From assembly GCF_001194135.2 (NCBI RefSeq), contig NC_068999.1, positions 24,745,505 through 24,801,143 of the forward strand: a DNA stretch of 55,639 nt. The letters are read 5' to 3'. The DNA comes from Octopus bimaculoides. Lineage: Eukaryota. The notes beneath the pieces were generated by a model. It was given only the letters and a program-made list of their open reading frames with translations, searched no databases and was not told where the DNA came from. Below are positions 2,098-55,100 of the stretch, one piece after another. The position numbers and the translations under genes were made by a program. Within the stretch, counting starts at the first letter, position 1. Each line of letters opens with the position of its first letter.

Positions 2098-2197
2098 NNN
2101 NNNNNNNNNNNNNNNNNNNNNNNNNNNNNNNNNNNNNNNNNNNNNNNNNNNNNNNNNNNNNNNNNNNNNNNNNNNNNNNNNNNNNNNNNNNNNNNNN
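2098..2197. other. Assembly gap flanked by (TA)n/(CA)n
   Basis: 100 N. Confidence 1.

Positions 2198-3230: not shown

Positions 3231-3292
<62 letters not shown>
2740..3292. repeat. Compound microsatellites: (TA)n, (GATA)n at 2944-2999, (TA)n at 3233-3292
   Basis: Direct observation. Confidence 0.95.
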
Positions 3293-3297
<5 letters not shown>

Positions 3298-4564: not shown

Positions 4565-4609
<45 letters not shown>

Positions 4610-5261
4610 TATTTTTTTAAAGCAAACTTTCTGCTTATTTTGCTGGGTATGATGGAAAGTGTCAGCTGTCCACTGCCAGCAGATTAAGGTGACACTTGTT
4701 TTACTGGTCATGCTTCAAAAACCCTGTGAAAAATTCTTGCAGTTCCAAGCAATGCTGATTTTTGTAGGTGTTCTATCTTTACATTTGTACCAATCTTTTT
4801 GTGTTACGTTGGTAGTTGAGTGCTGATACTTTCAAGTGCACCATTTACTATTGGTACCATGACTGTTGGTATCATGACCACAACCTTCATTATTATTATT
4901 ATTAATATTATTATGTTTATAAGAATGAGCATTAAAACAAAAAAAAGGTCAACTTTCTATCAAAGATTGCCACAATGATCAATAACAATTTTCACTATTG
5001 ATAGAAGCAGGATAGTTTCTTTTCTATTTTCAAATATTATGGCTATTTAGCCTTCCTACTGTTAATTTCTCAACAGAATTTCTCATTCATACAAATTGAG
5101 GCAACAGAGACTAATAACTTGGATGGGACAATTAGATCAAGAGGTTATGTTCAGGTGGTTCATTGACAATTTTAATATCAAAGAATTATTACTCAAATAG
5201 AGTTGACTAAGACAAGGAAAACTCCTCTAAGACAACAATAGCCACATCTTTTATCTCTTAT

Positions 5262-5592
5262 TTTTTACTTGTTTCAGTTATTTGACTGTGGTTTGAAGAG
5301 TTTTCATTGAACAAATCGACCCAGGACTTATTTTTTAGGCCTGTACTTATTCTATCAGTTTGTTTTGCTGAACTGCAAAATTATGGGGGACATAAATACA
5401 GCAACACCAGTTAAGAAGCGGTGGTGGAGGACAGACATAGACACAAAGATACAGGCTAACCAAATCCACTCACAAGGCTCTGGTTGGCCTGAGGCTATAG
5501 CAGAAGACACTTGCCCAAGATACCATACAGTGGGACTGAACCCAGAATCATGTGCTGGGAAGCAAGCTTCTTACACACACCATGCTTGTGCC
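5262..5592 (-). mobile_element. tRNA-derived SINE family A (long, internal microsatellite)
   Basis: Similar to the copies at 30318 and 35938. Confidence 0.8.
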
Positions 5593-6668
5593 ATAGTAGT
5601 AGTATTTTCAGTCAAAATTTAAGGTAAGTAAACCAATGCTTGATCTGCTACAAATAATAACCAAATTTGTTTCAAATCTCATCACATTATCTTATAAATA
5701 AAAGAAAAAGAAACTATACAGTAGTCCTCGTTACCCCTAAAAAGACAGAATGGTTAATTGCTGGGATACATTTGATCATAAATCTGATGAATCAAAGCTA
5801 ATCTAGGATTAAACAACAACAACAACACTGTTGAAAAGCTAAATGAGTAAAATGTCAGTCCATGTGGAGAGAAATTCTTACAATGTAAATGATAACTAAA
5901 ATTGAGTCTAAGACAAAAATGTTTTCACAGAAGTTCTGTGATATTAACTACAATACAAACAAAACAATAAAAGTTCACTTATAATCAATCAGTCACATAT
6001 TTTAAAGTTTAAAACAAAGAAAAAAAAAAAAATCTATCATAAAACCTACTTTTTGTTTTCAGCATTATTGTTAGTGCAAATTATTGTATGAAAGAAAATA
6101 TAGTGTAATAAAATAGAGAAAAACGCTAATAATACTATCAGTTGTTAAAACTGGTAATGAAATCCCATCCAATGTAGCTCTGCATATCAGCGATAACAAT
6201 GGGTGATGATGATGATGATGATAGTGACAAGATAGTCCTTAATCATTTTACTGTGGAGTTACATTAACCAACAACATCTATAAAAATGGAGGGAACCACT
6301 ATGTGGTCAGTTGATTTGTTAAGAAGGAAAAAAAGATAAAATTCCTTCAGATCACTTCTTACTGTCTTTAAAAAAGGATGGACATTGGATAATGTAGTAT
6401 TAGTATATAAAAAAAATGATGGATTTACTAAGGCTGGAATGTCTCTGATCATAGGCCTGCTCAATGAGAGCTAACCTGGGGTTAAACAACAACAATTAAC
6501 AATATTAACAATTCATAAACAATATTAATTGATAAAATTAACCAACATTATCATCATTATTATAGATAATGAAAAACCAACAATATTTTCAAATATTAAT
6601 CAATATTTTTACAAAGATGTAGGATCGCAAGATGCTTTATGTCTCTTCTTCTCAATATTCTTCTCAAT

Positions 6669-6882
6669 CCCTTTAGCATTCAGATTATTTTGTCAAATGT
6701 AATGCTTTTTTATTCATATTGTTTTGAATTAATTATGCATTATATTGTAGCTTTGAGATTATGATGATTGATTGTTTATTTTTAGAATGACATTGTAGAA
6801 TAGGTGTGAGAGGCCAGATCTCTTTGAACATAAAACAGGCAGGATATCTGGATCGTATATGGCCAGTTTAAATGCTAATGGG
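6669..6882. mobile_element. piggyBac-like MITE (same family)
   Basis: CCCTTTAGCATT...AATGCTAATGGG|ttaa; internal sequence similar to 1204-1423. Confidence 0.75.
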
Positions 6883-8325
6883 TTAAATATAAGTGAAGTA
6901 ACAATAGTTGCACACAGCACTAATAACCATTTATAATAACTAATATTATGTTAATATTAATCAACAATATTAATTGACCTCAATGTTAACTGCAGATATA
7001 AACCACTAGCATTAACTAATGTTATTAACCCTCATTACAAACCCCAAGTAAAAAATAGATATATGGAATCAACAAAAAAACTATGGAGAAAATGTAAAAT
7101 TTGCATTAGAATTTAGGTACAATATACAGTTGGATTTATAAAGTGTTTGGGATTAACTGAATATTTATATGTGTATTTATATATCCTGTTTTAACAGGAA
7201 AAAAAGAAGTAACCAAAAATTTATTCTGGAAATTGTCTTACATCGCAGCTATAAACCAATTCTTATGATAGACTAATGTAAGAGCTTTAAACTGAATCTT
7301 ATAACAGATTAATGTATTAGCCATAAACCAGTCACAGGAAAACTGCTGCTCACAGGATTTTCTGAATGATATGCTTAATGGGAAAGTACTTTGAATTTGT
7401 TTATTAGTGCAGCCTGTTTGATGATGAGCCATGTCTCATACAGCCCATTTCTCAAAATGATTACCCATGAATGCTTTAAATCAATTTGAGAAACTGATAA
7501 ATTGATATATACAAATTGTCATAATGGACAATGTTATGTTCTGACAATAATAAATTCCCTTTTTATATTTAGGCAATACATCTGTTTTTAAATTTACATT
7601 TTCTCCCATTATATTGATGAAGTACTGAAGTTACCAGTGAAGTACCACATGTGAATAAATGACTATATATTTGAGTTCAAATCCTACCAGGGATGAAAAC
7701 AGCTACCAGTAACAGTTCTATAGAACATATTTCTTTATAAAATAATCTATGTCCAATTAATATATAATTACATTAATTATATCAATATATAAATACATCA
7801 AGTGAGACCAGACTAAAATACAGTTATATTAGCACCGGGTGGCTACAGACAATGAAGACGACAGTGATGCTGATGATGATAGAGAAGAGAGACTTAAGCC
7901 AACTTCAGTTTGAATGGTTCTAGTGGTTGTTGAAACAAATTTACCATATGATAATTTGATATACAAAACAGTGGCAAAGATCAGAAAAAATATATACGAT
8001 TGTTTATAAGACAAAAAAAAGCACTAAAAAAATCACCTTGTGTCTTACATATGAAGTTGTTATCTTCAAGCTCACATAATTGGAGGGATTTGTGGGGAAA
8101 TGGAATAATCAATGGAGTTTAAACTAGTTAATAAAAACTACATATTTTATCAATCCCAGAGGAATAAAAGGTAAAAATGACCCAGTAGGATTTGAACCCA
8201 TGTCATAGAAGTAGCTAAATCTATAAGACTCTACTGCTTTTGACAGCTGCCTTCATTATAAACTCATATAACAACAATAACACACTGATATATATTAGCA
8301 GTAACAACTATATATATATATATAT

Positions 8326-8498
8326 NNNNNNNNNNNNNNNNNNNNNNNNNNNNNNNNNNNNNNNNNNNNNNNNNNNNNNNNNNNNNNNNNNNNNNNNNNN
8401 NNNNNNNNNNNNNNNNNNNNNNNNNNNNNNNNNNNNNNNNNNNNNNNNNNNNNNNNNNNNNNNNNNNNNNNNNNNNNNNNNNNNNNNNNNNNNNNNNN
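8326..8498. other. Assembly gap
   Basis: N run after (TA)n. Confidence 1.
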
Positions 8499-15500: not shown

Positions 15501-18500
15501 CTCTTAACCACTACGCCATATGCTCATGGGTATTTGGCATATGGCCCATAGGCATATGGCATAGTGGTTAAGAGCACAGGCTACTCACCCCAAGATTCTG
15601 AGTTCGATTCCAGGCAGTGACCTGAATAACAATAATAATAATATCGAAAAATACCTTAGAATGAGAATCCAGGTTTGAAATTTCCCCAAGACACCTGATG
15701 AAAGTTGGAGGGTATATCAGCTGAAACGTTGTGTTAACAACAAACAAGATGAGGACAAATATCTGTTAATTGTAAATAATGTAACATTTTAAAATTAAAA
15801 ACCTCTAGTCTTTGAGGCCAACTATTATGGAACTAAAGAACTACAGATGATTTCAAGTGTGAATTATATAACTGAATACCGGAAATCTTTTTCTCTTATC
15901 GGGCATCCAGTTGCCCTTCCCCTTTTACATAGGTAATCTTGCCACCCTCTCCTTTCTCTCTGGACTAACTAAACCAGATAGCAACCCACTTACCCTCTTT
16001 TTTTTTTTATTTTTACATTTATATCTGCAGCATCAGTAATGCTTACACCCACAATGCTCATAATGCTTATAATGCCCCAAACACTTTCATATATAATGCT
16101 TCCTTACTCCCAACCCCCAGTAGAGGCAACAACCTTAGCAATTCTAACATGTTTGAATGACGGTAGGTTAAAAGCAAGAACAACTATTATGATGTCTGTG
16201 ACCAGACGATCATGTGAACCTTCTTTTCAGGTGCTGAATAACATCTCTCCTTCCTGTGTTATCTCCCATATCTCTTTCCCAGTTTTCAGAGTTGGCACTC
16301 TAAATGTAGGCACATTGAAAGGTAGGTCTAGTGAGATTGTAGAGTCGCTTGAACGGAGATGTGTTGATGTATGTTGCGTACAAGAGGTAAGGTGGAGAGG
16401 AGCTTCAACCAGAGTCATCACAGGCAAAGCACATAGGTATAAACTCTTCTGGAAAGGTAATAGTGATGGAATAGGGGGTGTGGGCATACTTCTTGCAGAG
16501 AAATGGGTGGGTAAGATCATAAAGGTAGTGGGGGTGTGCGATAGAGTACTTAAACTCAGGCTAGTCTTGCAGAAAGGTATAGCTACAATTATCTCTACCC
16601 CAACAAGTGGGCCTTCCAAATGAATAGAAGGATCACTTTTATGATATTTGTCTGCAGGCTATCTCAAAGACGAGTGACAATGATCTCATCTTTGTAGCTA
16701 GAGATTTTAATGGGCATGTCGGACAGCAATCTGATATCTTCCATAGTGTACATGGGGGCCATGGAGTTGGTACCAGAAATGAAGAGGGAACTAGGCTCCT
16801 GGAGTTCTGCAATGCAAATAACCTATTGATTTGCAACACCAACTTCAGGAAGCCAGCTAGCCACCTGATAACCTATCAATCAGGCGACTCTACTAGCCAG
16901 ATTGATTTCATTCTCACCAGACAGAGGGATGCATGGTTGCTCTTAAATACAAAGACCCTCGCTGGTAAAGAATCCCCCCCCCCAACATAGACTACTAATT
17001 AGTGACTTTAGACTCAAGGCCAGAAGGATGCCAAAAAGCAGACCAATCTGGAAAAAAAGGACTGGAAGCTTAAGAAACCTTCACATGGTCAGAGATTTAG
17101 GGATACCCTTACTGAGAAATTTGATGATAGGGAGGAGGAGCTACAGTCCTGTGACAGAAAAGGCAGCTGGGAATTCCTGCGAGACAACTTGCTGAGTACC
17201 ATAGACCAAATCTGTGGCTGGTGCAAAGTCCCTTCTAGATCTAGGGTAACATGGTGGTGGAACAATACTGTACACAGGGCCATTAGAGCAAAGAAACAGG
17301 CTTGGAAGGCCAGGAAGAGTGGGGGTAGTAGGTAAAAAGCACTATCTGAACGTGATCGATGCTAGGCCCACCTGACTGACTCCTGTACAGATGGCATGTA
17401 CACTCTTGGAGTGGCTGGCGTTAGGAAGGGCATCCAGCTGCGGAAACATTGCCAGACCAGATTGGAGCCTCATACAGCCGCTGGCTCTCCAGACTTCAGT
17501 CAAATCGTCCAACCCATGCCAGCATAGAAAACGGACATTAAATGATGATGATGATGAATAGTGAGAAAATATTTTCAAGCAAAATAATTCTAATGGGAAA
17601 TACTTGTTATAAATGTAGAAAGCAAAATATTCAATATTTACCCAAGAAGTACATCTGGATCTTGACATATGATAGAGTTCATAACATTATGCTTGGGTGC
17701 TTTAATATTTATATAGCCTGAAAAATGAGAGAAAAGCAGTTTCAATTCTGTATTCTTTTGTAAAGGAATCTTCTTGTTTTCTTTTTCTTTTTTGATCCTC
17801 AATAATTTAGAGTTTATTAATAACATTTAAATACAAAGAATCAAAGAAACAGAAAAAGAAAAATAAGTAGGGGGGGGGTTAAGCAGCAAAGGGGAGGGGG
17901 CAATGGTCCACATGCCCCAGAACAAACGGTGTGCTCAGCCATGTATCATATTAGAATGTGTGTGCTGGTGAATATTTAAAGTCAAAGATATTCTGTAATT
18001 TGGGAATATAGATATCTGAAGTCTGTTTAATAAGTAACTCAGTTATGACAATAGAAAATTCTGGCTTTAAATGCACTAATAATTAATTTAAAACAAAACA
18101 TTGAGCATTCTTTTTATTGTTATTTATATTTTGGGCTCAAAATTTTTAATGCAACACACACACACACACACACACACAAACTGCTGGAATATAATTTGTA
18201 AATAGCCAATCGTTACATTGTCCTTTAGAAAGTGAAGTCAGGCTAAAATCAAGACATTGTTAGAGAAAGGTGTGTTCAAAATGACAACAGCACATAGCTG
18301 TTCCCTAATGATGGGAAGAAAGAGGCATGCAAATGTTATTCAAGAGATAACTGAAGGAAGAAAATGTGTGGAAAGAAGAACTACTATTTCATGTACACCA
18401 AAAAGAAGGACTGGCTTTTGAAGTGGGGTGTAATATAGTGAAAATTGCTATTAAAGATATGAAGGCAAAAAAGCAAGTAGGGTTCAAGCTAGTCAATCAT

Positions 18501-20037: not shown

Positions 20038-20282
20038 NNNNNNNNNNNNNNNNNNNNNNNNNNNNNNNNNNNNNNNNNNNNNNNNNNNNNNNNNNNNNNN
20101 NNNNNNNNNNNNNNNNNNNNNNNNNNNNNNNNNNNNNNNNNNNNNNNNNNNNNGTATAGTAATGCCCTTAATATAAATAAATATATTTATAGGGAATAAT
20201 TAATAAATTTTTCCCTTATGAGGTTTTTTCACACTAACTACTTGATAAATTCTTATAAAGATTTTATCCTATATTTAAATTG

Positions 20283-30549: not shown

Positions 30550-33500
30550 GTATGTATGTAGATGGAAACTGAAGGAAGCCTGTCATAGATATGTGTGTGT
30601 GTGTCTTTGTTTGTCCCCAACTATCACTTGACGACCAGTGTGGGTGTGTTTATGTCCCCGTAACTTAGTGGTGCAGCAAAAGAGAATAAGTACCAGGCTT
30701 AAAAAGAGAATAAGGACTAGGGTCAATTAGTTTGACTAAAATTCCTCAAGGCAGTACTCCAGTATGGCCACAGTCTAATGACTGAAACATGTAAAAGATA
30801 AAAGTAAGTATGGATGGTTGCAATTTTACTTAGCTTGATACATGTCTTCTCAGGCACAGCAAACCACTACAAGTCTCAGTCACTTGCTATCTCCTCTGTG
30901 AGACCCAATGTCCTTTCTCACCACTCTGAACCATGCCTTCTTGGGTTAACCCCTTCCACATGTTCCCTCCACAATTACAGATTGGCACTTCTTGATGCAG
31001 CTGTCCTCATCCATACACATCACATGACCATATCAGTGCAGTCTTCTTTCTTGCACACTACAACTCATGCATCACATACACAATTTTTCTCTCAAATTAC
31101 TTACACTCCGTCATTACCCATATATTACGCACACTGATATTACCCATCCAGCAGAGCATGCTGGTTTCATTTCTTTTAAGCCTTCATATGTCCTCTGTAG
31201 TCAAAGCCCGTGTTTCACTGCCATGTAGCATAGCTGCTTGTGCACAGGTATCATACAATCTGCCTTTCACTCTTGGGGAGAGACCTTTTGTTACTAATAA
31301 AGATAGTAGTTCTCTGAACTTTGCCCAGCCCATTCTTATTCTAGTAACTACACTTTCAGAACTACCCCCTCCACTGCTAATGTGGTCATCTAAGTAATGG
31401 AAACTATCTAATACTTCTAAGGATCCCACTCAGACATTTGACAAAGTTAATTTTCTGTACATTCTTAGTGTTTATTGTATCAGTACATCTGCCACACACA
31501 AAGACTACTTTCTCTGTTAACCTTCTTATGATATCACTGCACCTCTTATGTGTCCATAGCTTGCACTGGGTACACCATATGAAGTTTCTACCAATACCTT
31601 TTCCACGTATTGCGTAGGGCCAACCCCCTGATGGGATCAGCGATCTGTCTGTTTTCCTACTCACTTTGGTCTTTGTTAAATTAACTCTAAAACCTTTCGA
31701 TTCCAGACCTTGCTTCCACATCTGAAATTTCTTTTCTAATTCTGCTAGTGATTCAGCAATAAGAACCATAGTGGTACTTCCAAACCTCCTTCTTTGCAGA
31801 ATCATCAAATGCAAGTGAGCCATCATCCAGGTAAACGCACTTCTCTCCTATAACATCATGGTTGTCTCTGATGCAAACCTTTTTGGTAACACTAATGATT
31901 CTTTCAACAAAAACATTCTAAAAATTATATTGCAAAAGATCATAGAACCATTTAATTGCTTTCCCATTCATATTACAAATTCAGGATCAGTCCATTCGCC
32001 ATCACTGCCATTCGCACTTGATCCAACACTAAATTCTATCTCCTCAAATTAAGTATCAAAAATGATTTCTGCTATTTTAACCTGTATAATTCTACCTTCT
32101 CAGATACTTCATGTCAGCACAAATTATCTTGGTCAGTCTAATCCTGTATGTAGACAGAATACCTCTAGGAATAGATTTTCCAATGTGTCCTTTCTTGTAA
32201 GGAAAGGACAAGTGATAGGAGGGAGATTTGGCTGTTGTTTCTGCTAAAGGCTAAATTAGGAGAAACAAGTTACAATACTTAATATGAGATGAAATATCAA
32301 ATTACGAACAATAAATGAGTGATTTGATTGCTGCTATTGGTAGACCTCTTATATATGTCAGTATCAGACGAGTGCTTAAATGTCTAATATCACTTTATGT
32401 TAAAATCCCTGTCAATTAATATAACATTTATGTTGTTTTCATGCTAATTTGGATAGGTTTATATTACAGAAATGCTTTTTATGTTTCAGTTCTGTAACAT
32501 TCAATGTTATTGAGTAAGATCTGATATTTCTAAATTTCTGGTAACTTGTCAGCTGACAGATATTCTGTATCATAGTTTTTGCACCCATTCGTTGTATTGA
32601 CATTAGCATATATGGCTCTTTTCTAGTCTTGTCTTCTATATAGAAAATAATGAAATACTAATTTATACAGTAATTAGTTTAAACATGTTTTATCTTCTTA
32701 AGGAGTTTTGAAAACATGTTTGATAATCTCAATGTATAACATTGATAACAAAATAAATCTGAGTTGTATAGAAATGGAAGTGGTGATGTTCATTTCTTTT
32801 CCAAATCATTAATGAGAGAAGTAGAGCATTATCAGAGAAGAATAACAGTTAAATGCACAGCTAATAATTGATGCTGTAAAAACAGATGAAATACTAGTGA
32901 CTTTGTTCTTTGTAATAAGAAACTGACCTTCCAACAGAATGAATTGCTTGCCTGCAGCCTGAGCCAGATGACACTTCAGTTTCGGAGGTTGGATTAGGTT
33001 CAGAAGACAACTTACTGTAAAGACAAAACAGAAGAAAAATTGAGAAAATAATTTCAAATTAAGATGAAGAGAATGAATTACAGCAAAAAGACTGAATTAA
33101 TTTATTAGTAGAATCAAACATTAATTTGTTTAATGGCGTATTAGTATATTCCAGTTTGTCAAAAGTGAGAGACGGATCAGCGTAAAATAGGTATGCATTA
33201 CGTAGTTTTATGACCAAATAAATAATACAGTTATAGTCCATTAGCAATTTCAAATGAGAATGTTAGATGATAATCCATATCAAAGTAGATGTAGTACTAG
33301 TAGTAGATAGCAAGACAGGGAAGAGTGTGTATTAATGGTAGTAGACAGGGAAAGAGAGCAATTCCATATAAGGTAGCACAACCAAATAACAAACAATGAC
33401 TGTTATTAGTATGAGATGATATCACAGGGTGAAGCAATCATGTACAGAAGCAGCAATGTATAGATGGACATAATCTCTGACGTAAGCAGATAGACAATAT

Positions 33501-39780: not shown

Positions 39781-40499
39781 NNNNNNNNNNNNNNNNNNNN
39801 NNNNNNNNNNNNNNNNNNNNNNNNNNNNNNNNNNNNNNNNNNNNNNNNNNNNNNNNNNNNNNNNNNNNNNNNNNNNNNNNNNNNNNNNNNNNNNNNNNNN
39901 NNNNNNNNNNNNNNNNNNNNNNNNNNNNNNNNNNNNNNNNNNNNNNNNNNNNNNNNNNNNNNNNNNNNNNNNNNNNNNNNNNNNNNNNNNNNNNNNNNNN
40001 NNNNNNNNNNNNNNNNNNNNNNNNNNNNNNNNNNNNNNNNNNNNNNNNNNNNNNNNNNNNNNNNNNNNNNNNNNNNNNNNNNNNNNNNNNNNNNNNNNNN
40101 NNNNNNNNNNNNNNNNNNNNNNNNNNNNNNNNNNNNNNNNNNNNNNNNNNNNNNNNNNNNNNNNNNNNNNNNNNNNNNNNNNNNNNNNNNNNNNNNNNNN
40201 NNNNNNNNNNNNNNNNNNNNNNNNNNNNNNNNNNNNNNNNNNNNNNNNNNNNNNNNNNNNNNNNNNNNNNNNNNNNNNNNNNNNNNNNNNNNNNNNNNNN
40301 NNNNNNNNNNNNNNNNNNNNNNNNNNNNNNNNNNNNNNNNNNNNNNNNNNNNNNNNNNNNNNNNNNNNNNNNNNNNNNNNNNNNNNNNNNNNNNNNNNNN
40401 NNNNNNNNNNNNNNNNNNNNNNNNNNNNNNNNNNNNNNNNNNNNNNNNNNNNNNNNNNNNNNNNNNNNNNNNNNNNNNNNNNNNNNNNNNNNNNNNNNN
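39781..40499. other. Assembly gap in the divergent promoter region
   Basis: 719 N between (TA)n tracts. Confidence 1.
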
Positions 40500-42124: not shown

Positions 42125-42160
42125 ATGGCGCACCTTTCGCTTAATCAATATCTGACCAAA
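42125..42160 (+). CDS. PCID2: PCID2 exon 1 ([12 protein letters not shown])
   Basis: aaaaATGG start, AAA|GTAAGA donor, phase 0. Confidence 0.93.
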
Positions 42161-44532
42161 GTAAGAAATTAGTCTTTTTTTACTAATAAAATTATTTTTT
42201 AATGTCATCTATTTTAGTAGAAAATTATAAGCAAAATCATTAGATTATTTAGTATGATGAATATTTGAAATAGTTTTGTTTTTATGATTATAAACGCATT
42301 CAGCTTGAATCAACTCCCGTGTAATGTTTATATTTTACTATAAAATAAAACTTATTTATAATTATATAGAATTGCTGCAGTGTTTTTAGTTTGCATCCAA
42401 TCTGTTAATTGTGCATTAACAAATGTAGTTTTCACTTCACAACATTAGAAATATCTGAGAAAATATGAAAATCAGAATTATTTGATTTTTAAAAATGTTA
42501 TTTAGACATTTTATAATTTATTGTAATTGGTTTGCAGGTCCAAAATGCATTCCGAAATGGAAATGGATTAGCAGCTGCTGTAAGTATAAAAATTAACTTC
42601 TAACAATATCATATTTTATTTTAAGATTTAGTGTTACTATCGTACATTGCAATACTGTCCAGATATTACTAAACTGCTTGGTTTAAACCAGTTTTCTGTG
42701 AAACACACTTATGGCCATTGGGAAATATTGCTAGTAAATAGGTGAGGGTTAGTGACAGGAACAGCTTTTGGCCACAGAGAGTCTGCTTCAGCAAATTTAA
42801 TCTAACCCATGGAAACATTGACTTTAAAATGATGATAGGAGTTTGGGACGTAATTCTCTTGCAAAGGTTAAATATATTGTAAATAACATTAACAACAATG
42901 TAACAACTTCACAATAAACGTAAAATAAATCCATAATCTGTGAGATATTCTTATTTGGTTCATAATTTTTCAACGTATTATTTTTTGCCCATGGAAGTCG
43001 AGAGCAACCTAACATGAGGAAGGTCTGATTAGAACATTTTAATACTGTTATTCACGATAAACTAATCATTTCACTCTATTTTATTCATTGAAGCTTAAAC
43101 GACTGTTAGTATACTTGTGTTTGTATCATGATAAACAGACTATTATTGCACGTTCACAGTGATTGGTGATAAGAAAGATGTCCAGTTGTAAATATATCAT
43201 GCAAAACACTTGCTAGGAACGGAAAATATGTCAGCAAAGCCTACTCAATGTGTTGGTGCTTCGTGTGGTAATAATTGAAATATATAGAAGACAAGTTTGT
43301 CCAACTAAGACGTGCATGGCGATGCAGGTGTAAACTGATGATAATGATGCTGGTTGTCATAAAAGAACATTTTAATTACTGAGTAGCTGATTTGCGAAAT
43401 AGCCCTTAACTAATTTACAGTACTCCTAAAGATACTGCTGTCATTAAAAATCAACTTTTTTTTCTCTTCACAGAATCATAATTTTAACTCCACTTTTGCA
43501 CATGTGAAATGGGCTTTATTTCATTGTTTTGGCAATTGCTAGAAGTATGTAGTACTCACCCTGCTACATACCTTTCTCACTTAGGTATCAACACTTGGAT
43601 ACCCTTTTTACTATTAACCACTCAACTAGAATGTTACTAATGAAACTAGATTTTTGTCGATTTGGCAAACTGGGCCAAGCAGAGTTATGTACCTTACTGA
43701 AGGGTAAAGGACTATGACTTAAATAATTTATGACCATGTCAATCACAACTTCTATGATATTGATAGTACTTTCTTCTTTACTTATCTTGTAAACCATGTT
43801 TTACTTTCAGACGTTGTTTTCTTTCAAACATGCTCATGTTGCAAACAGACGTTTGCAGTTGGAGAAACCAGAATCCGACTGTCAAAATTATTTTGACCCT
43901 CCATATGATGAATTAGTTGCAGCTCATCTCAAGTAGGTACTCTTTTATTCTTTTATTGGTTTCAGTCATTGGACCGTGGCCATGCTGGGGCACCACTTGC
44001 TTATAAGTTTATAAGTTGATCGATCATATCCACTCCAGTTCTTATTTATCAATCTTCATCTGTTGCCTGACCAAGTTAATTTTTTAGTTTTTAATAAAAA
44101 GGGACGCCACTCAATATACTGATAAATGAACATACTGGTGTGCATATAATACACACACACGTACACACGTGTGTGTGTATCGTCATTGTTTTAATATCCA
44201 CTTTTCCATACTTCCATGGATCAGAGAAAATCTATTAAAGCAGATTTTCTGCAGCCAAATGCCCTTCCTATCACCAACCCTCATCTTTTTCTAAGTAAAG
44301 TAATATTTCTCTTGGCTAGACATACCTTTCACTGAAGTTTGGAAACAAACATCACTTGTATGATGATGATGATGCTTGTTTACAGTCACTATATGATGTT
44401 AGACAAGTGTATACACACATACACACACATATGATAGGCTTCTTTCTGTCTTCCAAAATCCAGTCACATTGGATTGGACTCAAGACCATCATAGTTGATG
44501 AGCAAGATTCTTAACCACCAAGTCACACTTGC

Positions 44533-44578
<46 letters not shown>

Positions 44579-44956
44579 NNNNNNNNNNGTCCTCAGTCAA
44601 ATCGTCCAACCCATGCTAGCATGGAAAGCGGACGTTAAACGATGATGATGATGATGATGATGATATATATATATAGTAAAACTCCAAAAATGAAGAACAA
44701 ACACAAAACAAAAACAACGCGAGGACGTGGTACATGTAAAGTATTAGCAGATGCTCAGGGAAGGAAAGAAAGGTGGTTTAACGTTTTGAGCAAAGCTCTT
44801 CTTCAGAAACAGAGGAAAATCCAATAGAAAAGGAAGGCGAAGGAAAAAAAATCGCCAACAATTCACATGTGGTTACATCACGGAATTCTTTCTACCATCG
44901 GATTACATTACCTTGTTCATTCGGAATACAGCATTTCTGCACTTTGATTGTGAATC

Positions 44957-44989
<33 letters not shown>

Positions 44990-47900
44990 TAGACTGTATA
45001 ATGCATGTGTATGAACAGCCATGCTACATGGCAGTGAAACATGGGCCGTGACTGCTGAGGATGTGCATAAGCTTGCAAGGAATGAAGCGAGTATGCTCCA
45101 CTGGATGTGTAATGTCTGTGTGCATACACGACAGAGTGTAAGTGCCCCGAGAGAAAAGTTGGATTTAAGAAGCATCAGATGTGGTGTGCAAGAGAGACGA
45201 CTGCGCTGGTATGATCATGTGTTGCAAATGAATGAGGACAGCTGTGTGAATTAGTGCCACACCCTAGCAGTTGAGGGAACCCGTGGAAGAGGTAGACCCA
45301 GGAAAACCTGGGATGAGGTGGTGAAGCACGACCTTCAAACATTGGGCATTACCGAAGCAATGACTAGTGACCAAGACCTTTGGAGATATGCTGTGCTTGA
45401 GAAGACCTGACAAGCCAAGTGAAACCATAGCTCATGGCCTATGCCAGTGGGTGTAACCAGCCCATTTATGAATACCTCTCATTCATTGGACAATAAACCT
45501 TGCTTGTGAAGACATTAAGGCAAGTAAAATCAAAGTCGAAATTGCTGATGTGGCCGATGACTACCGCCTGATTGGCACTCTTGCCAGTGGAACGTTAAAA
45601 GCTCATTCGAACGTAGGGTGTAACCGGCCCACGTATGAATACCCCTCATTCATTGGACAATGAACTCTGCTTATGAAGACCTATTGTGGAAAGTGTAAAC
45701 AAATCAAAATCACTGATGTGGCCAATGAAAGTACTACCTAAGTGGCACTCGTGCCAGTGGAATGTTAAAAACATCCAAGCGTGATCGTTGCTAGGGCCAC
45801 AGATTGGCTCCCGTGCCAGTGACACGTGAAAAGCACCATTCGAGCATGACCAATGCCAACATCGCTTTACCGGCTTGTGCTGGTGGCACGTGAAAAACAA
45901 CATTTGAGCGTGGTTGTTGCCAGTGCTGCTGGACTGGTTCCTGTGCAGGTAGCACATAAAAACACCTTTTAAGCATTGTCGTTGCCAGAACCGCCTGACT
46001 GGCCCTCATGCCGGTGGCATGTAAAAGTGCCCACTACACTCTTGGAGTGGTTGGCATTAGGAAGGGAATCCAGCTGCAGAAACTGTGCCAGATCAGATTG
46101 AGCCTGGTGTAGCCTCTGGCTCATCAGTCCTCAATCAAACCGTCGAACCCATGCCAGCATGGAAAGCGGACATAAAATGATGATGATGATACTAGCCGAA
46201 AGACTACCCTCTGGGTGGCTTTCTGCTTGCCACTCCATAATATTTCCACATTTGATTCCCAATTCTAATAATTTTTGTATATTAAGTCTAATTAGTTTTT
46301 GTATTATAGTGCTCACTTGTTTAGTAAATATTGCTTTCATTATTTTATCACAGTCATAATCTATCTTTTTTAAACAAACATCAAGGTAGTCCAACTACAT
46401 AAGTTGTCCAATATAATTTATTTTCAGTATGTATAAACAATAAACTGAGGGCATTTACACAGCAAATTTAAGTCAACAGAATACCTGATTTCCTCATCTG
46501 AAATAATGAAATATAACTTGAAATGAAAAAATTGCAATGAATATATATTAGGTAGATTATTATTAATAAAAATATTTTCAGACAGTCAAGCTTTTAATAT
46601 TGCTTTCTTTTAGTACTTTTAGTAATTGTTACATATTTAATTAATAAGCAGCTTTCTCCATTATAGTACACACACACACACACACACAGCCAAAAGTCAT
46701 GCACCAAAACTTTTGACTTTTATCATTATTCATTTTGATCATCATGTACAAGTAGCCGTGCATTCTTTCGTCATTATTTTATTTAATTTATTCAAATTTA
46801 GAAAAATTGAAGCATGTCTGACAATTCTGGACCATTCTGAACCTATTTTTTGTCTTGGGACATAACTTTTGGAATGCCCTTTATGTGTGTGACATGTTTC
46901 TGTACAGTTTCTGCCTACCTAATTCTGTCCATAATACATTGGTCAATCGAATGTACATGATACAGTACATGATACAGGCCCAAAGTACTATACTGTGAGA
47001 ATGAACATAGAACCACTTGATTGTGAAGTGTAGTTGTTAATCACATGGTTCTGTGTGTGTTTCTATAATGTTTATGACATAACTTTTTCTTAATTAACAG
47101 AGAAAAGATTAAAAGAAAATTTGTATACACAAATATGAAATAACTGAATTTGTCTTTTGCATTTCAGATGTTGCTGGGCTGTTGCAAACAGTGACTTCTT
47201 AAGTGCTTATGGTTGCCAAGCACTGGTTGTCCAATATCCTTTGAAATATTAATTTATTCATTATATAATCAATTGTTTATCGCTGTCCTGGCCATGATCA
47301 TCCTGTATTTTCTCAGATTTATTTTATACTTTTATTGATTTCAGTCATTGGACTGTGGCCTTACTGGTATACCACCTGCAAGAGTTTATAAGTTGATCAT
47401 ATCCACTTCAGTTCTTATTTAACAATCTTCATTTATTGATTGGCCAAGTTAATTTTTTTTTTAGTAAAGGATGCAACTCAATACACTGAGAAAGACAAAT
47501 AGACATACCTCATCATCATCATTGCTTAACGCCCACCTTCCATGCTAGCATGGGTGGGTGTGCAATATATTATTATCAGCATTATTGTTTGACGTCTGTT
47601 TTTCATGCTGGCATGGATTGGACAGTTTAACTGAGGACTGGCAAGCCAGTAGGTTGCACCAGACTCCAATCTGATCTGGCAAGGTTTCTACAGCTGGATG
47701 CCCTTCCTGATGCCAACCACTCTGAGAGTGTAATGGGTACCTTTTATGTGCCACCGGCATGGGAGCCAGTCGGGGGGCACTGGCATCAGCCACATTTGGA
47801 AGGTGCTTTTTATGTGCCATCAGCACAGGAGCCAGTTGGGAGGCACTGGCATTGACCACGTTCGGATGGTGCTTTTTATGTGCCATCGGCACGGGAGCCA

Positions 47901-48460
47901 GTTGGGGGGCACTGGCATTGCTTTTTACGTGCCACCAGCATGGGGAGCCAGTCAGGCAGCACTGGCATTGACCCCACGCTTGAATGGTGCTTATTATGTG
48001 CCACCAATACGGGTGCCAGTCAGACGGCACTGGCATCAGCCATGACTATGGTTTCACTCGACACAACAGGTCTTCTCAAGCACAGCATGTCACCTGGTGA
48101 TTCAAGGGTACCTTTAGATGGGCTGGTTATGCGACACTGGTATTGGTCACAGCTGCGATCTCACTTTACTTGCCAGGTCTTCCCAATCACAGCATATCTC
48201 CAAAGGTCTCGGTCTCTTGTCATTGCCTTTGTGAGGCCCAACATTTGAAGGTCGTGCTTCACCACCTCATCCCATGTCTTCCTGGGTCTACATCTTCCAC
48301 AGGTTCTTTCCACTGTTAGGATGTGACACTTCTTCACACAGCTGTCCTCATCCATATGCAGCACATGACCATACCAGCGCAGTCATCTCTCTTGCACACC
48401 ACATCTGATGCTGCTTATGTCCAATTTTTCTCTCCGGGCACTTACACTCTATCGTGTATG

Positions 48461-48494
<34 letters not shown>

Positions 48495-50064
48495 ATATTA
48501 TATTGAGGAAATATCAAAACCAAGGCAGAATGAGTATCTCAAGTCATTTAGAATAATTCAATTAGGGTAAGATGAATTTGAAGTCTTACAGCTATTTCTA
48601 GGATAACCCAAGTGGTTAGTTAGCATGTCCGTGCACTGGGTATTCCATCATCAGAGACCCAGTATACTGACATGCTAACCAATCACTTGGGTTATCCCAG
48701 AAACAGTTGTAAGACTTCAAATTCACCTTACTCTGATTAATTTATTCTAAATGACTTGAGATACTCGTTCTAATATAATATATACATGCTACAACAGAAC
48801 CCTAACATGGAGATCCAGCCTTAGTTGTGATCTTGGAACCTAATGGTCAACCAACTATAGCACTTACCCAGCTACCTATTCATTTAGATCACAAGTTGCA
48901 AGCAGTCAGGCCTCATCTCCAGTTTGATGATAACTTCCCTCCACCTAGTTTTGGAAGCCTTAAGAGAAAGAATGAAAAGGAATGTCAGTAGAATGTCATG
49001 GTTGGAAATAGATGATATGAATGTATTAAATACAAGTGTCTGCATTAATGTGTTTGTCATTTGCATTCATGAGTTATTATTCTTGTATGTGTGTGTATCA
49101 GAAGGTAGTTGAGATATAAAAACAAATAAGGGTTTCACCTCTCGCTTTTTATATTTTTATACAATTAACTCTTAGACTTTGCATTTCTATAAAATAAAAT
49201 TTAAAAAATAGATGGAAATACCTGCATATCAGGTATTGGATGAGTTTATTATATGATGTATGATTGCACATAGTTTTGAAGTCCCTGAATTAAAGTTAAT
49301 TAAAGACACTTAACTGTTAAAGACTGTTGATTGATGAATATAGATGACTGATGATACTTTATAACATTCAAGAAGACCCATCCACTACAATAGAATTGAC
49401 ACTGGGGCTGGTGCCACATAAAAAGCATTCAGTGTACTTTGTGGAGTGGTTGGCATTAGGAAGGGCATCCGAGTGTAGAAACCATGCTAGAACATACAGT
49501 GGAGCTTATTTAGGCTCCTGGTCTTACCAGCTCCAGTCAAACTGTCCAACTTATGCCAACATGGAAAACAGATCTTTAGATAATGATGCTGATTAGAGAT
49601 TAATGATGATGATGATGATGATGATAAGACTTAGCCAGCAGTCAAGGAGTATGTGGACTAATTTCTATTGCTGTTTACCTTTTACTAGTTCTCATCATAT
49701 GTTGCGCGTTTTTTTTCTGCTTGTATAATTTCAGAAAAATTCTTAGCAATTACCACCCCAATATCACATGTCAAACATTTATTTATTTAGTGTTTTATTT
49801 CTTTTTTTCTATGCTAATATTGACAGAATGGTTTTGCATGCTATTGAAGTAATGATGCTTTTATGAAGTAAGTGGGAAACCTCTTGTTAGAATGACAGAT
49901 GTAGTACTTGAATTTGTGACCATCAGGTCACTTTTCCATTCCGTTAACTTCATATCCATGAGTGTACCCCTCCCAAAATACACACACACACGTACACGCA
50001 CACAAGTGTGCACACGCATGCACACACATACACACAAGTGCACACGCATGCAAACAAACACGTA

Positions 50065-50113
<49 letters not shown>

Positions 50114-53100
50114 ATATATAGACATGCACTCACTCATGCACATGTAGTGGTAGCTAAATAGTTGAATGATCTCCCTTGCAAGAAAGATTATAGAGTAACC
50201 TCCCTTTATAAGTTTCTTGAAGCATCTGTGTCATGAGACGTGATTCTTAATTATTCAAGAAGCTTAGTGTTTCTCTTGGAAGTTTCTAGAATGTCTAGCG
50301 TTCCATTAATAAAAACAGCTTGCTAACCCAGCTCTTTGCTTTTTAGTCAATTAGACTGAGGGCCATTCACGTCATTGCTATGTCCGTCTATTTCTCCACA
50401 CCACATGACTGAAAACTACCACTTAGCTGTTATTTCTATATTTCCTATCTCTGAACTTTCTTGCATAGATTACTTCATTCAACTACATTCTATATTTAGA
50501 TTTTGTATCATCATTGACCAGTAAATAAAATATATTTTTATGTAGTAAATATATAATTCTTGAATTTATTCTTCATCTCTATACGAACTCTTATAATCAT
50601 ATACACGCGGCCACATCAACACCTGGTACTGACTATATATAACCACTACACACACACAAAAAAAAAAAGTGAGTAAAGTATAAATAGACTTTTTAGCTCC
50701 TGTTTATTGTGATGTGTAGCATTCAATGATTGTACTGTGTATTAATTACTTCATTGGTTGCAATAGTTTATACTTAACCTTCCAAATAGCTTGCACCAAA
50801 GCTCTACAAAGCCAGAAAGATGAGAATTGGTTTCTTCCAGTAATGTTTGAAGTTTGTTTAGACCTTCGTCGTTTTGCAATCCGAGTAAGTTTTCTTTTTG
50901 TACTTAATTCAAATCTAACAATGAAATGGTTTTTCATTTGTCAAGAATGGATTGGTGATAACATCATCATCATTTAATGTCCACCCTCCATGCTAGCATG
51001 GGTGGGAATAACTTCTTGTAATTGTGTCTTTGTCTGGATGTGTCCTTTACATATAAATCACTTTCACAAGATCCTTTCCAATATTTATAGTTTGTAGGTA
51101 TATACTATGGGACTGATTGAATGCATATATTCCAAGGTAGTTCTGTCTGCCAAGGCTCAACTTGAGCTGTGCCACATCAGCTGTGTTTATACAACACTGT
51201 CTCTCTGTATCTATCATAATTCTGTTTGTGTCTGTCACAACACTAATTGATTATACCATATCATTGATTGATTATATACAAATACTAATGTTGCAGTCTT
51301 TGGTCATAGGTGACTGGATATAAGTTGACTGGGATATTTTAAAGCAATTAAAGTGGGAAAAACCCCCCAAAAAACTAGGAATGTCTTAAGAAACACAAAC
51401 ATTGATTTTTTTTTTGAGTGACTTTAGTTACATTTAACCCTTTAACATTGAGATTACTCTGTCAAATGCAATGCTTATTTATTCGCATTGTTTTGAATTA
51501 AGCATGCATTATCTCATATCTTTGTGATTTCAAGGATGTGGTTGTTTATTTTTAGAATGACATTGTTGGGTAGATATGAGATGCCAGATCTGACCAGTTT
51601 GAACATAAAACAGGTTGGGTGTTTGGGCCAGATTGTAATGCTGATTGCATCCCTGTTCTTGAAGGCAAAGCTGTATGAATAATAGTTTAATACTGTGGCA
51701 TGACATTTTGGCCACATGTTTTCTACTATAAATCAAGTGTACGAATGCTCTGAGAGAAAACTTTGTTTGAGAGGATCCCTATCATAAATAATATATATTT
51801 TATATAAGGTGGGCCAAAAGACATGCACATTTGATTATAAGTCAAAGGACATACTTCACTTTTTCTAAAATTGAATAAAATAAATAAAATAATGATGAAT
51901 ACATACATACTGTACATAAATAAAATGTGAAATGTTTTGGTGCATGACTTGTAGCCCACCTGTTGTTTTTTTATCACTGATCTATATTAACAAAAGATGT
52001 AAAACATCATTGCTTTTAAATAGAAATTCTTTCTGTGACATGTGTCTGGGATCTAATTGCACAGAGAACCTGTTGCTACTTTTCTTGTCAGTGAACTTGT
52101 AATTGACCTGTAACTATTGATGTTATTGTTTTTAACTAAATACCATATTAAATATAATTAATAATAAATTAATGGTGATCATTTTTAAAGTAGTTTTTAA
52201 AAAATAGTGAAAAACTAGAGATGTCTGAAACTCAGACATTGAAGATTTATTTGTAAAAAGTTTTATTATTTTCTAGGCTGATGTTCAGACAGTAAAGAAA
52301 GGCAAAGGTCGAAGTGGTGAAAAATTAGAGAAAGCAGCTGACTTACTGATGGGCTGTTTCCGAGTGTGTGCCAGTGATAGGTTTGTCTTTCCATGAAACT
52401 AGCTTACAGTTGATTCATTTAACATTTCATAGTCTCACAGTACTTTTAAGGTTTTCAAAGTTTGTTCAAAGAATTCATTCTTGTGTGTGAAAATTTAGTG
52501 TCAACATTAACTATTAAGTACTAAACAAATCAATGAAAGAGCTTCTTTGTAGTCTTTCAGTCTGCTAGAAATAGCAACCAAAATCTCTTTCAAAACACAT
52601 ACTTGTATTGCCTGAAAGCAAGGACACATTAGATAATGTCTGGAGTAGAAAATATTTAAAAAATGTGATAGTTATGGCTGAAATGTCTTTGATTACAGTT
52701 TCACCTGATCCAGGTTAAGTTAAATAACAACCAAGTATTCCTCGATATTTTGTTTATTCATTGTAACATTTCTGAGTTGTAGTTTCTCTTTTCTTATCTC
52801 TCCAGTTGTCAATTGAGGCAGCAAATCAGGTACTTCTTTGCTTTCTAGCATCAACACAAAACCAAAATTGTGATTTGTTTCTGCTAGAATGTTGCTCTGG
52901 ACACCTCTGAGACTAAAAGTCTCCTTCCAAACGCTCACTCATTCACATAGAACTTATAATGTAAATTTAGCTTATGTTGCTAAACACATACATTGTGATG
53001 TAAATTTAGCAGTTATATAAATCTTCATTAAAAAGGCTTAGAACATTCATGATACATATATATTGCTATCTTAATTATTATTTAATTAATATTGTTTATT

Positions 53101-53424
53101 TCATTAAGACCGCGGGCTGCCAGAATTGTTAGCATGCCGGGCAAAATGCTTAGAGATATTTTGTCCGCCTTTACATTCTGAGTGCAAATTCTGCCATGAT
53201 TGACTTTGCCTTTAGTCCTTTCGGGATTGATAAAAGAAGTACCAATTAAACACTGGGGTTGATGTAATTGATTCTCCCCCTCCCCTACACATGCTGGCTT
53301 TGTGTCAAAATTTGAAACCAATATTGTTTATTTCATTATGTTAATTAGTCGAGCTGCAACAGAAGATTCCAAGAAATGGGGCATGCTGAATTTAGTGAAC
53401 CAATTATTCAAAATTTATTTTAAG
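42125..53424 (+). CDS. PCID2: PCI domain-containing protein 2 (TREX-2 subunit), N-terminal 181 aa, 7 exons; gene continues beyond the window
   Basis: Exons 42125-42160, 42538-42579, 43811-43932, 47168-47233, 50788-50884, 52277-52380, 53349-53424 give [10 protein letters not shown]...[12 protein letters not shown]...[13 protein letters not shown]...ENWFLPVM...LDLR.FA...[18 protein letters not shown]...[21 protein letters not shown]. This is collinear with recalled human PCID2 (MAHITINQYL...[21 protein letters not shown]). Confidence 0.96.
42538..42579 (+). CDS. PCID2: PCID2 exon 2 ([14 protein letters not shown])
   Basis: ttgcag acceptor, GCT|GTAAGT donor, 42 nt. Confidence 0.9.
43811..43932 (+). 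CDS. PCID2: PCID2 exon 3 ([12 protein letters not shown]...AAHLK)
   Basis: tttcag acceptor, AA|GTAGGT donor, 122 nt. Confidence 0.95.
44579..44588. other. Assembly gap
   Basis: 10 N between (TA)n and an RTE tail. Confidence 1.
44589..44662 (+). mobile_element. Young RTE 3' tail beside a 10-N gap inside (TA)n
   Basis: gtcctcagtcaaatcgtccaacccatgctagcatggaaagcggacgttaaac(gat)n. Confidence 0.8.
44776..44810 (-). ncRNA. Minimal hammerhead motif, G12>A mutated
   Basis: GTTT-CTGAAGA-A-GAGC(ttt)GCTC-AAAA-CG-TT-AAAC. Confidence 0.55.
44990..46190 (+). mobile_element. 5'-truncated RTE LINE (ORF2 end + full 3' UTR)
   Basis: [31 protein letters not shown]...LRWYDHV..MNEDSCV...[14 protein letters not shown], then tail and (GAT)n. 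Confidence 0.92.
46688..46880. mobile_element. Tc1/mariner-type MITE (13013 family, decayed)
   Basis: gccaaaagtca...ataacttttgg; shared body. Confidence 0.6.
47168..47233 (+). CDS. PCID2: PCID2 exon 4 ([22 protein letters not shown])
   Basis: tttcag acceptor; ends at a U12 donor CA|ATATCCTTTG; 66 nt. Confidence 0.9.
47575..48470 (-). mobile_element. 5'-truncated RTE LINE inside the PCID2 U12 intron
   Basis: [13 protein letters not shown]...[17 protein letters not shown]; 3' UTR with ~60-nt tandem units at 47740-48040. Confidence 0.9.
48527..48771. repeat. ~245-bp palindrome (~115-bp arms, 17-nt loop) inside the PCID2 U12 intron
   Basis: agaatgagtatctcaagtcatttagaat...cactggg [tattccatcatcagaga] cccagt...attctaaatgacttgagatactcgttct. 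Confidence 0.88.
48583..48658 (-). ncRNA. Hammerhead motif embedded in the palindrome
   Basis: GTCT-CTGATGA-TGGAATA...TATCCTA-GAAA-TAGCTG-TA-AGAC; stem II imperfect with a long loop. Confidence 0.55.
49395..49625 (+). mobile_element. RTE 3' tail fragment
   Basis: gtggttggcattaggaagggcatcc...gtcaaactgtccaac...atggaaa, (GAT)n. Confidence 0.7.
49980..50120. repeat. Compound (CA)n-like and (TA)n microsatellite
   Basis: Direct observation. Confidence 0.9.
50788..50884 (+). CDS. PCID2: PCID2 exon 5 ([32 protein letters not shown])
   Basis: 97 nt, CGA|GTAAGT donor; 5' boundary is either 50788 (AT acceptor) or 50797 (AC acceptor). Confidence 0.9.
51438..51645. mobile_element. piggyBac-like MITE (same family, right end decayed)
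   Basis: ttaa|CCCTTTAACATT and the shared internal body. Confidence 0.65.
51806..51962. mobile_element. Tc1/mariner-type MITE (13013 family, reverse orientation)
   Basis: AGGTGGGCCAAAAG...AGCCCACCTG. Confidence 0.65.
52277..52380 (+). CDS. PCID2: PCID2 exon 6 ([11 protein letters not shown]...CFRVCASD)
   Basis: ttctag acceptor, AG|GTTTGT donor, 104 nt. Confidence 0.95.
53113..53320 (+). mobile_element. SINE family B ending about 30 nt before PCID2 exon 7
   Basis: Same head and core as 14267. Confidence 0.8.
53349..53424 (+). CDS. PCID2: PCID2 exon 7 ([25 protein letters not shown])
   Basis: attag acceptor, AAG|GTAAAA donor, 76 nt. Confidence 0.95.
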
Positions 53425-53968: not shown

Positions 53969-55100
53969 ATCATCATCATCATTTAATATCCGCTTTCCAT
54001 GATAGCATGGGTTGGACGATTTGACTGGGGACTGGTGAACCAGATGGCTACACCAGACTCCAATCTGATCATATATCATCATCATCATCATCGTTTAACG
54101 TCCGCTTTCCATGCTAGCATGGGTTGGACGATTTGACTGAGGACTGGTGAAACCGGATGGCAACACCAGGCTCCAGTCTGATTTGGCAGAGTTTCTACAG
54201 CTGGATGNNNNNNNNNNNNNNNNNNNNNNNNNNNNNNNNNNNNNNNNNNNNNNNNNNNNNNNNNNNNNNNNNNNNNNNNNNNNNNNNNNNNNNNNNNNNN
54301 NNNNNNNNNNNNNNNNNNNNNNNNNNNNNNNNNNNNNNNNNNNNNNNNNNNNNNNNNNNNNNNNNNNNNNNNNNNNNNNNNNNNNNNNNNNNNNNNNNNN
54401 NNNNNNNNNNNNNNNNNNNNNNNNNNNNNNNNNNNNNNNNNNNNNNNNNNNNNNNNNNNNNNNNNNNNNNNNNNNNNNNNNNNNNNNNNNNNNNNNNNNN
54501 NNNNNNNNNNNNNNNNNNNNNNNNNNNNNNNNNNNNNNNNNNNNNNNNNNNNNNNNNNNNNNNNNNNNNNNNNNNNNNNNNNNNNNNNNNNNNNNNNNNN
54601 NNNNNNNNNNNNNNNNNNNNNNNNNNNNNNNNNNNNNNNNNNNNNNNNNNNNNNNNNNNNNNNNNNNNNNNNNNNNNNNNNNNNNNNNNNNNNNNNNNNN
54701 NNNNNNNNNNNNNNNNNNNNNNNNNNNNNNNNNNNNNNNNNNNNNNNNNNNNNNNNNNNNNNNNNNNNNNNGCCAGCAGGGGTAAGAGCTCTCTAAACTT
54801 TGCCCAGGCTATTCTTATTCTAGCAGCTACACTTTCAGCGCACCCACCCCCACTACTAACTTGATCGCCCAGATAGCGGAAGCTATCGACTACCTCTAGT
54901 TTTTCACCCTGGAATGAGATAGAAGTTGTTTCCTGTTTGTTTGCAGTCTTTATTGCACCTGAACATCTGCCACAAACAAAAACTAACTTGCTAGTTAACC
55001 TGCTTTTGATGTTGCTGCACCTCTTATGTGTCCATAGCTTGCACCGGGTACATCTTATAGAGTTACTACCTACTCCTTTTCTACATACTGAGCAGGGCCA
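53968..55100 (-). mobile_element. RTE LINE (probably one young copy spanning the gap) plus an adjacent older tail copy
   Basis: Two tandem tails at 53968-54070 and 54076-54207; after the gap the ORF2 segment reads WPCSVCRKGVGSNSIRCTRCKLWTHKRC...YLGDQVSSGGGCAESVAARIRIAWAKFRELLPLL. Confidence 0.88.
54208..54771. other. Assembly gap within an RTE element
   Basis: 564 N. Confidence 1.

Follow-up and report, generated by a model that had tools for sequence, protein, structure and literature searches.

A minor-spliceosome intron of Octopus bimaculoides PCID2 with very probable AT-AT termini

Where does intron 4 of octopus PCID2 end? The question arises in a window of 55,639 nucleotides (nt) from Octopus bimaculoides (RefSeq assembly GCF_001194135.2, contig NC_068999.1, positions 24,745,505 to 24,801,143 of the forward strand), the + strand of which carries the gene for the mRNA-export factor PCID2 in seven mapped exons. 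Intron 4 opens with a U12-type 5' splice site, and three candidate 3' terminal dinucleotides, AT, AG, and AC, follow its branch site in close succession. From sequence comparison, we conclude that this intron (47234 to 50787, + strand, 3554 nt) is very probably a constitutively spliced A-type (AT-AN) U12 intron with AT-AT termini. Four independent lines indicate the AT ending at 50787, namely the length of the encoded protein, the public gene models, the orthologous introns, and spliced transcripts.

Exon 4 (47168 to 47233, +) ends in phase 2 with GTT GTC CA (GGTTGTCCA), and the intron begins ATATCCTTTG at 47234, directly after the GTCCA of the exon. The U12-type 5' splice site, ATATCCTTT (47234 to 47242, +), is a perfect consensus match and has the RTATCCTT form expected at the first intron base. 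Counted as a 9-mer in the window, ATATCCTTT occurs once against 1.16 occurrences expected in shuffles, which is not significant alone, and it was rejected as a stand-alone statistical signal. The weight of the donor comes from its conservation and from its position: it stands exactly where homology ends the exon, and the orthologous donors share its codon phase. At the other end of the intron, a U12-type branch-site motif of the TCCTTRAY type, TACTTAAC (50771 to 50778, +), differs by one mismatch from TCCTTAAC and offers A50776 or A50777 as the candidate branch point. The sequence then runs cttccaa-AT-AG-cttgc-AC-caaagct. The AT (50786 to 50787, +) ends 11 nt past the first of these adenosines and 10 nt past the second, a short distance of the kind expected of U12-type introns. 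The AG (50788 to 50789, +) ends 12-13 nt and the AC (50795 to 50796, +) 19-20 nt from the branch A, the latter being 19 nt when counted from the second adenosine.

The three dinucleotides have different consequences for the protein. Cleavage after the AT joins GTCCA to AGCTTGC and gives the full-length reading ...VVQ-ACTKALQ..., with exon 5 at 50788 to 50884 (+, followed by the donor GTAAGT). Use of the AG shifts the frame and leads to a stop. The AC option stays in frame and gives VVHKALQ, a product shorter by three residues in which Ala-Cys-Thr is deleted and Gln becomes His. An exhaustive listing of in-frame pairs of donors (GT, GC, or AT) and acceptors (AG, AC, AT, or AA) in the window returned no conventional GT/GC-AG solution of the right length. 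A boundary shifted by one base (TA..TA) was set aside as well because, despite giving the same mRNA, it is not a recognised splice-site pair. The original prediction, made from the letters of the stretch, had named the same donor, branch site, and acceptors, and all of its letters and coordinates agree with the sequence. It had counted the exon at 47168-47233 as the fourth, which is correct among the seven mapped, and its three translations (full length, three residues shorter, and frameshifted to a stop) were reproduced by joining exon 4 to each acceptor. Its gap-free AT reading with a branch site about 10 nt upstream also holds, the count being exactly 10 nt when made from the second A of that site. 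The span that it assigned to the intron, 47234-50796, is right at the start and wrong at the end, since the intron proper stops at 50787 and 50796 is where the AC alternative would end.

Protein length provides the first line of evidence. Homologues were searched for with 399-residue chimeric queries in which the N-terminus encoded by the window was followed by the human, and then by the cuttlefish, C-terminus, and 248 PCID2 models were retrieved. Spacing across the junction was counted between the anchors HL[RK] and NW.LP, both of which are present in 155 homologues. The 34-residue spacing produced by the AT acceptor is found in 117 of the 155 and the 31-residue spacing produced by the AC acceptor in none; the spacing is greater in the remaining anchored homologues, among which are retention or read-through models. 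The window's QACTKALQ aligns column by column with QAFTK in Haliotis, QTFTK in Lottia, QVYTR in annelids, QSFTK in a termite, and QSFLR in mammals. The Thr of ACTK is shared by 25 of the 117 homologues, other molluscs and annelids among them (65 of the 117 have Leu instead), and the residue that follows is Lys or Arg in all 117. Several tblastn matches begin at 50795 with Thr-Lys, at the Thr codon that would be lost under the AC option. The human sequence QSFLRAFQ, which the original prediction had used for comparison and which served here as a tblastn lead and as padding, was confirmed across the junction region by primate database sequences.

Public models place the junction at the same base. 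When exons 1-7 are spliced with the AT acceptor, the resulting 181 residues are identical, 181 of 181, to the N-terminus of O. bimaculoides XP_014777786.1. The sequence VVQACTKALQ is present in both RefSeq isoforms of O. bimaculoides, X1 and X2 (which differ only at the N-terminus), in O. sinensis XP_029648114.1, and in a GenBank model of Argonauta hians.

We then consider the orthologous introns, an alignment that the original prediction had proposed as a check. Donors of the sequence ATATCCTT stand in the same codon phase in seven further genomes: O. sinensis, Argonauta, a cuttlefish, Lottia, Haliotis, Lingula, and zebrafish. In all eight genomes, the distance from the branch A to the last intron base is 10-12 nt. 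With a slash marking the splice junction, the 3' end reads ACTTAACCTTCCAAAT/AG in O. bimaculoides, ACTTAACCTTCCACAT/AG in O. sinensis (ending CTTAACCTTCCACAT), and CCTTAACCAAAATTAT/GG in the cuttlefish Acanthosepion pharaonis, all three being AT-AT. It reads CCTTAACCCTCCATAC/AG in Argonauta hians, ...CCCTAC/AA in Lottia, ...TGACAC/AG in Haliotis, ...ATTTAC/AA in Lingula, and ...CTGAAC/AT in zebrafish, all of them AT-AC. The branch motif is CCTTAAC in Argonauta, Acanthosepion, and Lingula, TCTTAAC in Lottia, CCTTGAC in Haliotis, and CTTTAAC in zebrafish. Once these 3' ends are aligned, T50787 occupies the place of the canonical terminal C; the proposed alignment thus finds AT in O. sinensis and Acanthosepion and AC at the same position elsewhere. 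In Acanthosepion, neither an AC nor an AG alternative is in frame, so AT is its only productive site. Intron length varies widely among the cephalopods: against the 3554 nt of O. bimaculoides, the orthologue has 4514 nt in O. sinensis (3646-8159 of the locus read), 504 nt in Argonauta (3289-3792), and 340 nt in the cuttlefish (17489-17828).

The intron is also traceable far outside the cephalopods. A U12-type intron at the same codon and phase was found in Lottia, Haliotis, Lingula, and zebrafish, and can be deduced for primates. A primate isoform of 453 residues (labelled 'U2-a' in a study of twintrons, PMC3564746) contains 54 extra codons between VQ and SFLR, starting with Q-Y-P (CA/ATATCC) and ending with a Thr codon (AC+N), which points to a 162-nt AT...AC intron at this site. 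This isoform, one of several primate PCID2 forms of 450-453 residues, looks like in-frame retention of the whole U12 intron. PCID2 of Branchiostoma belcheri has no intron here (about 1875-1950 of its locus), where GTT CAG TCT CTC ATC AAG is uninterrupted, which indicates that the U12 intron was lost in that lineage. On this comparison, octopus intron 4 appears to be the orthologue of an ancient AT-AC intron of other molluscs, a brachiopod, and vertebrates including primates, with the terminal C replaced by T and the splice site unmoved. The presence of AT in Octopus and Acanthosepion and of AC in Argonauta would imply two changes at the terminal base within the coleoids. Independent C-to-T changes in Octopus and in the cuttlefish, and a single change followed by reversion in Argonauta, appear equally parsimonious with present sampling.

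Transcripts supply the fourth line. Ten SRA runs (larval RNA-seq of Sepia esculenta in at least one case) yielded ten spliced Logan mRNA contigs with the junction GTCCA/AGCATGCACC, and GTCCA/GAACTGC was found in four contigs of a third cephalopod (runs SRR27666069-82 and SRR24189501). Both sets keep the register of the AT reading, as QACTK in Sepia and QNCTK in the third cephalopod. One further contig of the latter species, L023, reads GTCCA-AT-GAACTGC (about positions 285-300) and carries 2 nt more than the four normal contigs (L014-17; about 275-290 in L014). The insertion produces GTC CAA TGA with an in-frame stop and splits the open reading frame (ORF) into pieces of 97 and 311 residues. 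The extra AT could stem from 3' cleavage 2 nt early, in which case it is the end of the intron, or from 5' cleavage 2 nt late, in which case it is the intron's first two bases. The associated protein, P0246, had been expected to come from an intron-retaining contig and proved to be this spliced +2-nt variant.

Taken together, identity to XP_014777786.1, conservation of segment length, and positional homology place the junction after T50787. The first of two options raised by the original prediction, a genuine AT-AT intron, is supported by the 117-to-0 spacing count, the RefSeq models, the homologous position of the base, and the Sepia mRNA junction. Its removal is predicted to depend on the U11/U12/U4atac/U6atac small nuclear ribonucleoproteins. 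In the established model of U12 splicing, U11 would recognise ATATCCTTT, and U12 would pair with TACTTAAC, bulging A50776 or A50777. How far the 3' splice site lies from the branch point would then be the main factor in its choice, the last base itself mattering little, and cleavage after T50787 would join GTCCA to AGCTTGC to give ...VVQ-ACTKALQ.... The AG (+2 nt) and the AC (+9 nt) would be by-products of the exon-5 Gln-Ala and Thr codons and would serve at most as occasional error sites. Because the 3' site would be chosen by distance and the terminal base relaxed, a change from AC to AT should be nearly neutral, which would fit two changes at this base within the coleoids.

Several observations weigh against this reading, or at least against its strictest form. 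XP_014777786.1 is a computed model, and the support for the junction comes from sources other than O. bimaculoides RNA-seq reads or cDNA. The Sepia mRNAs derive from a sister species of the sequenced cuttlefish, and the first base of exon 5 is A in the mRNA and G in the genome; the mRNA and the genome are thus from different species, and the AT junction there is read across the two. The octopus branch site deviates from the consensus by its one mismatch. The pyrimidine fraction between -23 and -4 is 0.65 in intron 4 and 0.55-0.70 in the five GT-AG introns of the gene, so this criterion does not discriminate in the AT-rich PCID2 sequence. The L023 variant shows that the junction of the PCID2 U12 intron is not always precise. 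In addition, the 12-13 nt between the branch A and AG50789 fall inside the reported optimum of 11-13 nt (PMC3584512), and some use of this AG is therefore plausible. Low-level use of the AG or the AC may occur in octopus.

The alternative that survives best is the second option of the original prediction, a regulated switch among tandem acceptors in which AT would give the full-length protein, AG a frameshifted substrate for nonsense-mediated decay (NMD), and AC a protein three residues shorter, together tuning PCID2 output. Such a switch would make sense of three dinucleotides within 10 nt, with the AG inside the distance optimum (PMC3584512), and could draw on the frameshifting +2-nt junction of L023 in another cephalopod and on human PCID2, which is listed among U12/U2 twintron genes and has alternative products (PMC3564746). 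However, the AG and the AC are wholly accounted for by the codons CA/A GCT (the AG being the third base of Gln CAA and the first of Ala GCT) and ACC (50795-50797). An identical AG stands after the canonical AC acceptor of Argonauta and of Haliotis, and the corresponding bases are GG in Acanthosepion, GA in the third cephalopod, AA in Lottia and Lingula, and AT in zebrafish. The AC is out of frame in Acanthosepion (AAC, Asn), so the alternative sites are not conserved beyond coding need and are not kept in frame in decapods. L023 adds 2 nt rather than removing them and is not one of the proposed events; it shows imprecision at this intron, not regulation. Furthermore, alternative use of U12-type 3' splice sites is possibly error rather than regulation, and AT-AG pairs are disfavoured (PMC3584512). 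No isoform that is three residues shorter or frameshifted was present among the 248 retrieved models, which are database models and not reads, with AC spacing judged where both anchors are present. We consider a regulated three-way switch unlikely.

A related proposal concerns precision. The coleoid PCID2 U12 intron might have a relaxed 3' end, at which C and T have toggled at least twice and imprecise cleavage, of the kind seen in L023 or through possible use of AG50789, yields enough frameshifted, NMD-targeted transcripts to act as a brake on the dosage of this mRNA-export factor. It would parallel the twintron and retention isoforms of primate PCID2, and we regard it as a speculative and improbable extension of the AT-AT reading.

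An ordinary AT-AC intron ending at 50796 would pair the AT donor with its canonical partner and keep the reading in frame, at the cost of a protein that lacks Ala-Cys-Thr and has His for Gln. The 31-residue spacing that it requires, found in no homologue against 117 with 34, speaks against it, as does the loss of a Thr-Lys pair matched by several homologues from 50795 on. Its AC would lie 19 nt from the branch A, as compared to 10-12 nt in every orthologue. The orthologous AC of Argonauta aligns with AT50787 and not with AC50796, and the RefSeq models read QACTK. This alternative is very unlikely.

A subtler alternative shifts both splice sites by 2 nt, giving an AT-AG intron at 47236-50789 (ATCCTT...ATAG) and the full-length sequence VVQSCTKALQ. 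Among the enumerated in-frame pairs, it alone besides AT-AT was plausible and gave the full length, and L023 can be read as 5' cleavage 2 nt downstream. Yet the RefSeq and Argonauta models have QACTK and not QSCTK, the Sepia mRNA has CAA GCA and not CAA TCA, the U12 donor consensus puts cleavage before ATATCC, and AT-AG is a disfavoured pair (PMC3584512). In octopus cDNA, the shifted sites would predict the junction GTCCAATCTTGC and AT-AT splicing GTCCAAGCTTGC. We give the shifted pair hardly any credence.

Finally, an assembly or sequencing error or a polymorphism, such that base 50787 is really C and the intron a canonical AT-AC intron at the same position, would need a single C-to-T difference in an assembly whose several N gaps in the window mark it as draft quality, but this explanation, which the original prediction had named as one that would undo its reading, is scarcely tenable because T stands at the homologous base in the independently assembled O. 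sinensis (CCACAT/AG) and in Acanthosepion (TTAT/GG). Coleoid RNA editing is of the A-to-I type, and RNA editing as an explanation for T50787 was dismissed, the T being genomic in three species.

The AT-AT reading bears chiefly on annotation, where its main value is practical. Read-through of the donor leaves a Q-Y-P signature, which marks CA/ATATCC across vertebrates and cephalopods and was counted in 40 of the 248 retrieved PCID2 models (38 vertebrate). The Acanthosepion pharaonis model reads through the donor (VVQYPF), the JGI model of O. bimaculoides (A0A0L8GVG9) lacks exon 4 and continues across the branch site, and O. vulgaris PCID2 is split into two gene models, CAI9736506 and CAI9736505. 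The PCID2 U12 intron repeatedly breaks automated gene models and is thus well suited to testing how non-canonical U12 termini are annotated. In addition, Argonauta (AC) can be set against Octopus or cuttlefish (AT) in a clean natural comparison in which donor, branch site, and spacing are the same. To judge from these sequences, it would show that the minor spliceosome cuts at the 3' end by distance from the branch point and tolerates a C-to-T change at the last base.

The interior of intron 4 consists of repeats and sequence resembling short interspersed elements. Retention of the octopus intron would bring a stop after 5 codons (VVQYPLKY, then stop). Three ORFs of at least 90 residues within it were scanned and gave no Pfam match. 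The ORFs at 47545-48248 overlap tandem repeats, and the idea that the intron itself is coding was rejected. The expansion of the intron in Octopus includes tandem repeats of 66/118 nt (47742-48036) and simple repeats (50000-50120). A short interspersed repeat, TTTCAGTCATTGGAC[C/T]GTGGCC, has copies at about 43955-43990 and 47335-47375, just within introns 3 and 4.

The remaining exons of PCID2, all on the + strand, are unexceptional. The coding part of exon 1 (42125 to 42160, 12 residues) is followed by the donor GTAAGA, exon 2 (42538 to 42579, 14 residues) is bounded by ttgcag and GTAAGT, and exon 3 (43811 to 43932) is followed by GTAGGT. Exons 6 and 7 lie at 52277 to 52380 and 53349 to 53424, and introns 1-3, 5, and 6 are ordinary GT-AG introns. 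No exon beyond exon 7 was found in the window; the rest of the gene lies past 55639 or inside the N gap at 54208-54771, which could hide exon 8. Six N runs, 1682 bases in total, interrupt the window (2098-2197, 8326-8498, 20038-20153, 39781-40499, 44579-44588, and 54208-54771), and several of the long listed ORFs cross such gaps and are artefacts. Upstream of PCID2, a 140-residue ORF on the - strand (31404-31826) has a borderline match to the PHD-finger (Pfam PF00628, E=7.9e-5, 23 bits against a cut-off of 24) and may be an exon of a neighbouring opposite-strand gene. A 194-residue ORF on the + strand (16039-16623) has a weak, below cut-off match to the endonuclease/exonuclease/phosphatase family (PF03372, E=0.0085) and may be a decayed fragment of a long interspersed element (LINE).

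With respect to known systems, octopus intron 4 adds one more case to an established subtype, and PCID2 was already known to have this intron; the case calls for no new mechanism, and its AT-AT junction is already implied by the public RefSeq protein models. A pan-eukaryotic survey that included Octopus sinensis reports minor introns in that species (PMC10639083), and human PCID2 is a listed U12/U2 twintron gene (PMC3564746). The vertebrate PCID2 U12 intron shares with that of octopus the gene, the codon, and the phase (after CA of the Gln in VVQ), as well as the ATATCC donor, which was read directly in zebrafish and deduced in primates from the 453-residue isoform. It differs in being short (98 nt in zebrafish and, by the same deduction, 162 nt in primates, as compared to 3554 nt in octopus), in ending in AC rather than AT, and in that its retention is in frame in primates and runs into a stop in octopus. 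The octopus arrangement also resembles the NAGNAG and other tandem acceptors of U2-type introns in having closely spaced candidate 3' sites, one of them three codons away; unlike those, it belongs to a U12 intron, its candidates include non-AG sites, one option is out of frame, and conservation does not extend beyond codon need. The closest likeness is to the documented AT-AT U12 introns, of which there are six in human and six in mouse, including human ERCC5 and IK and mouse Gpaa1, Slc9a8, and Zc3hdc6 (Sheth et al. 2006, PMC1557818). These, like octopus intron 4, have an AT donor with the U12 consensus, a branch site near the 3' end, and a terminal AT; the octopus case lies in another gene and phylum and has AT in two cephalopod lineages. 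The AC of a related orthologue, Argonauta against Octopus, is the same 'subtype switching' between AT-AC and AT-AT that has been tabulated for human and mouse orthologues, for ERCC5, Gpaa1, Slc9a8, and Zc3hdc6 among others (PMC1557818). By its termini, octopus intron 4 would also fall within the AT-AN definition of the A-type, CENATAC-sensitive class (PMC8280824).

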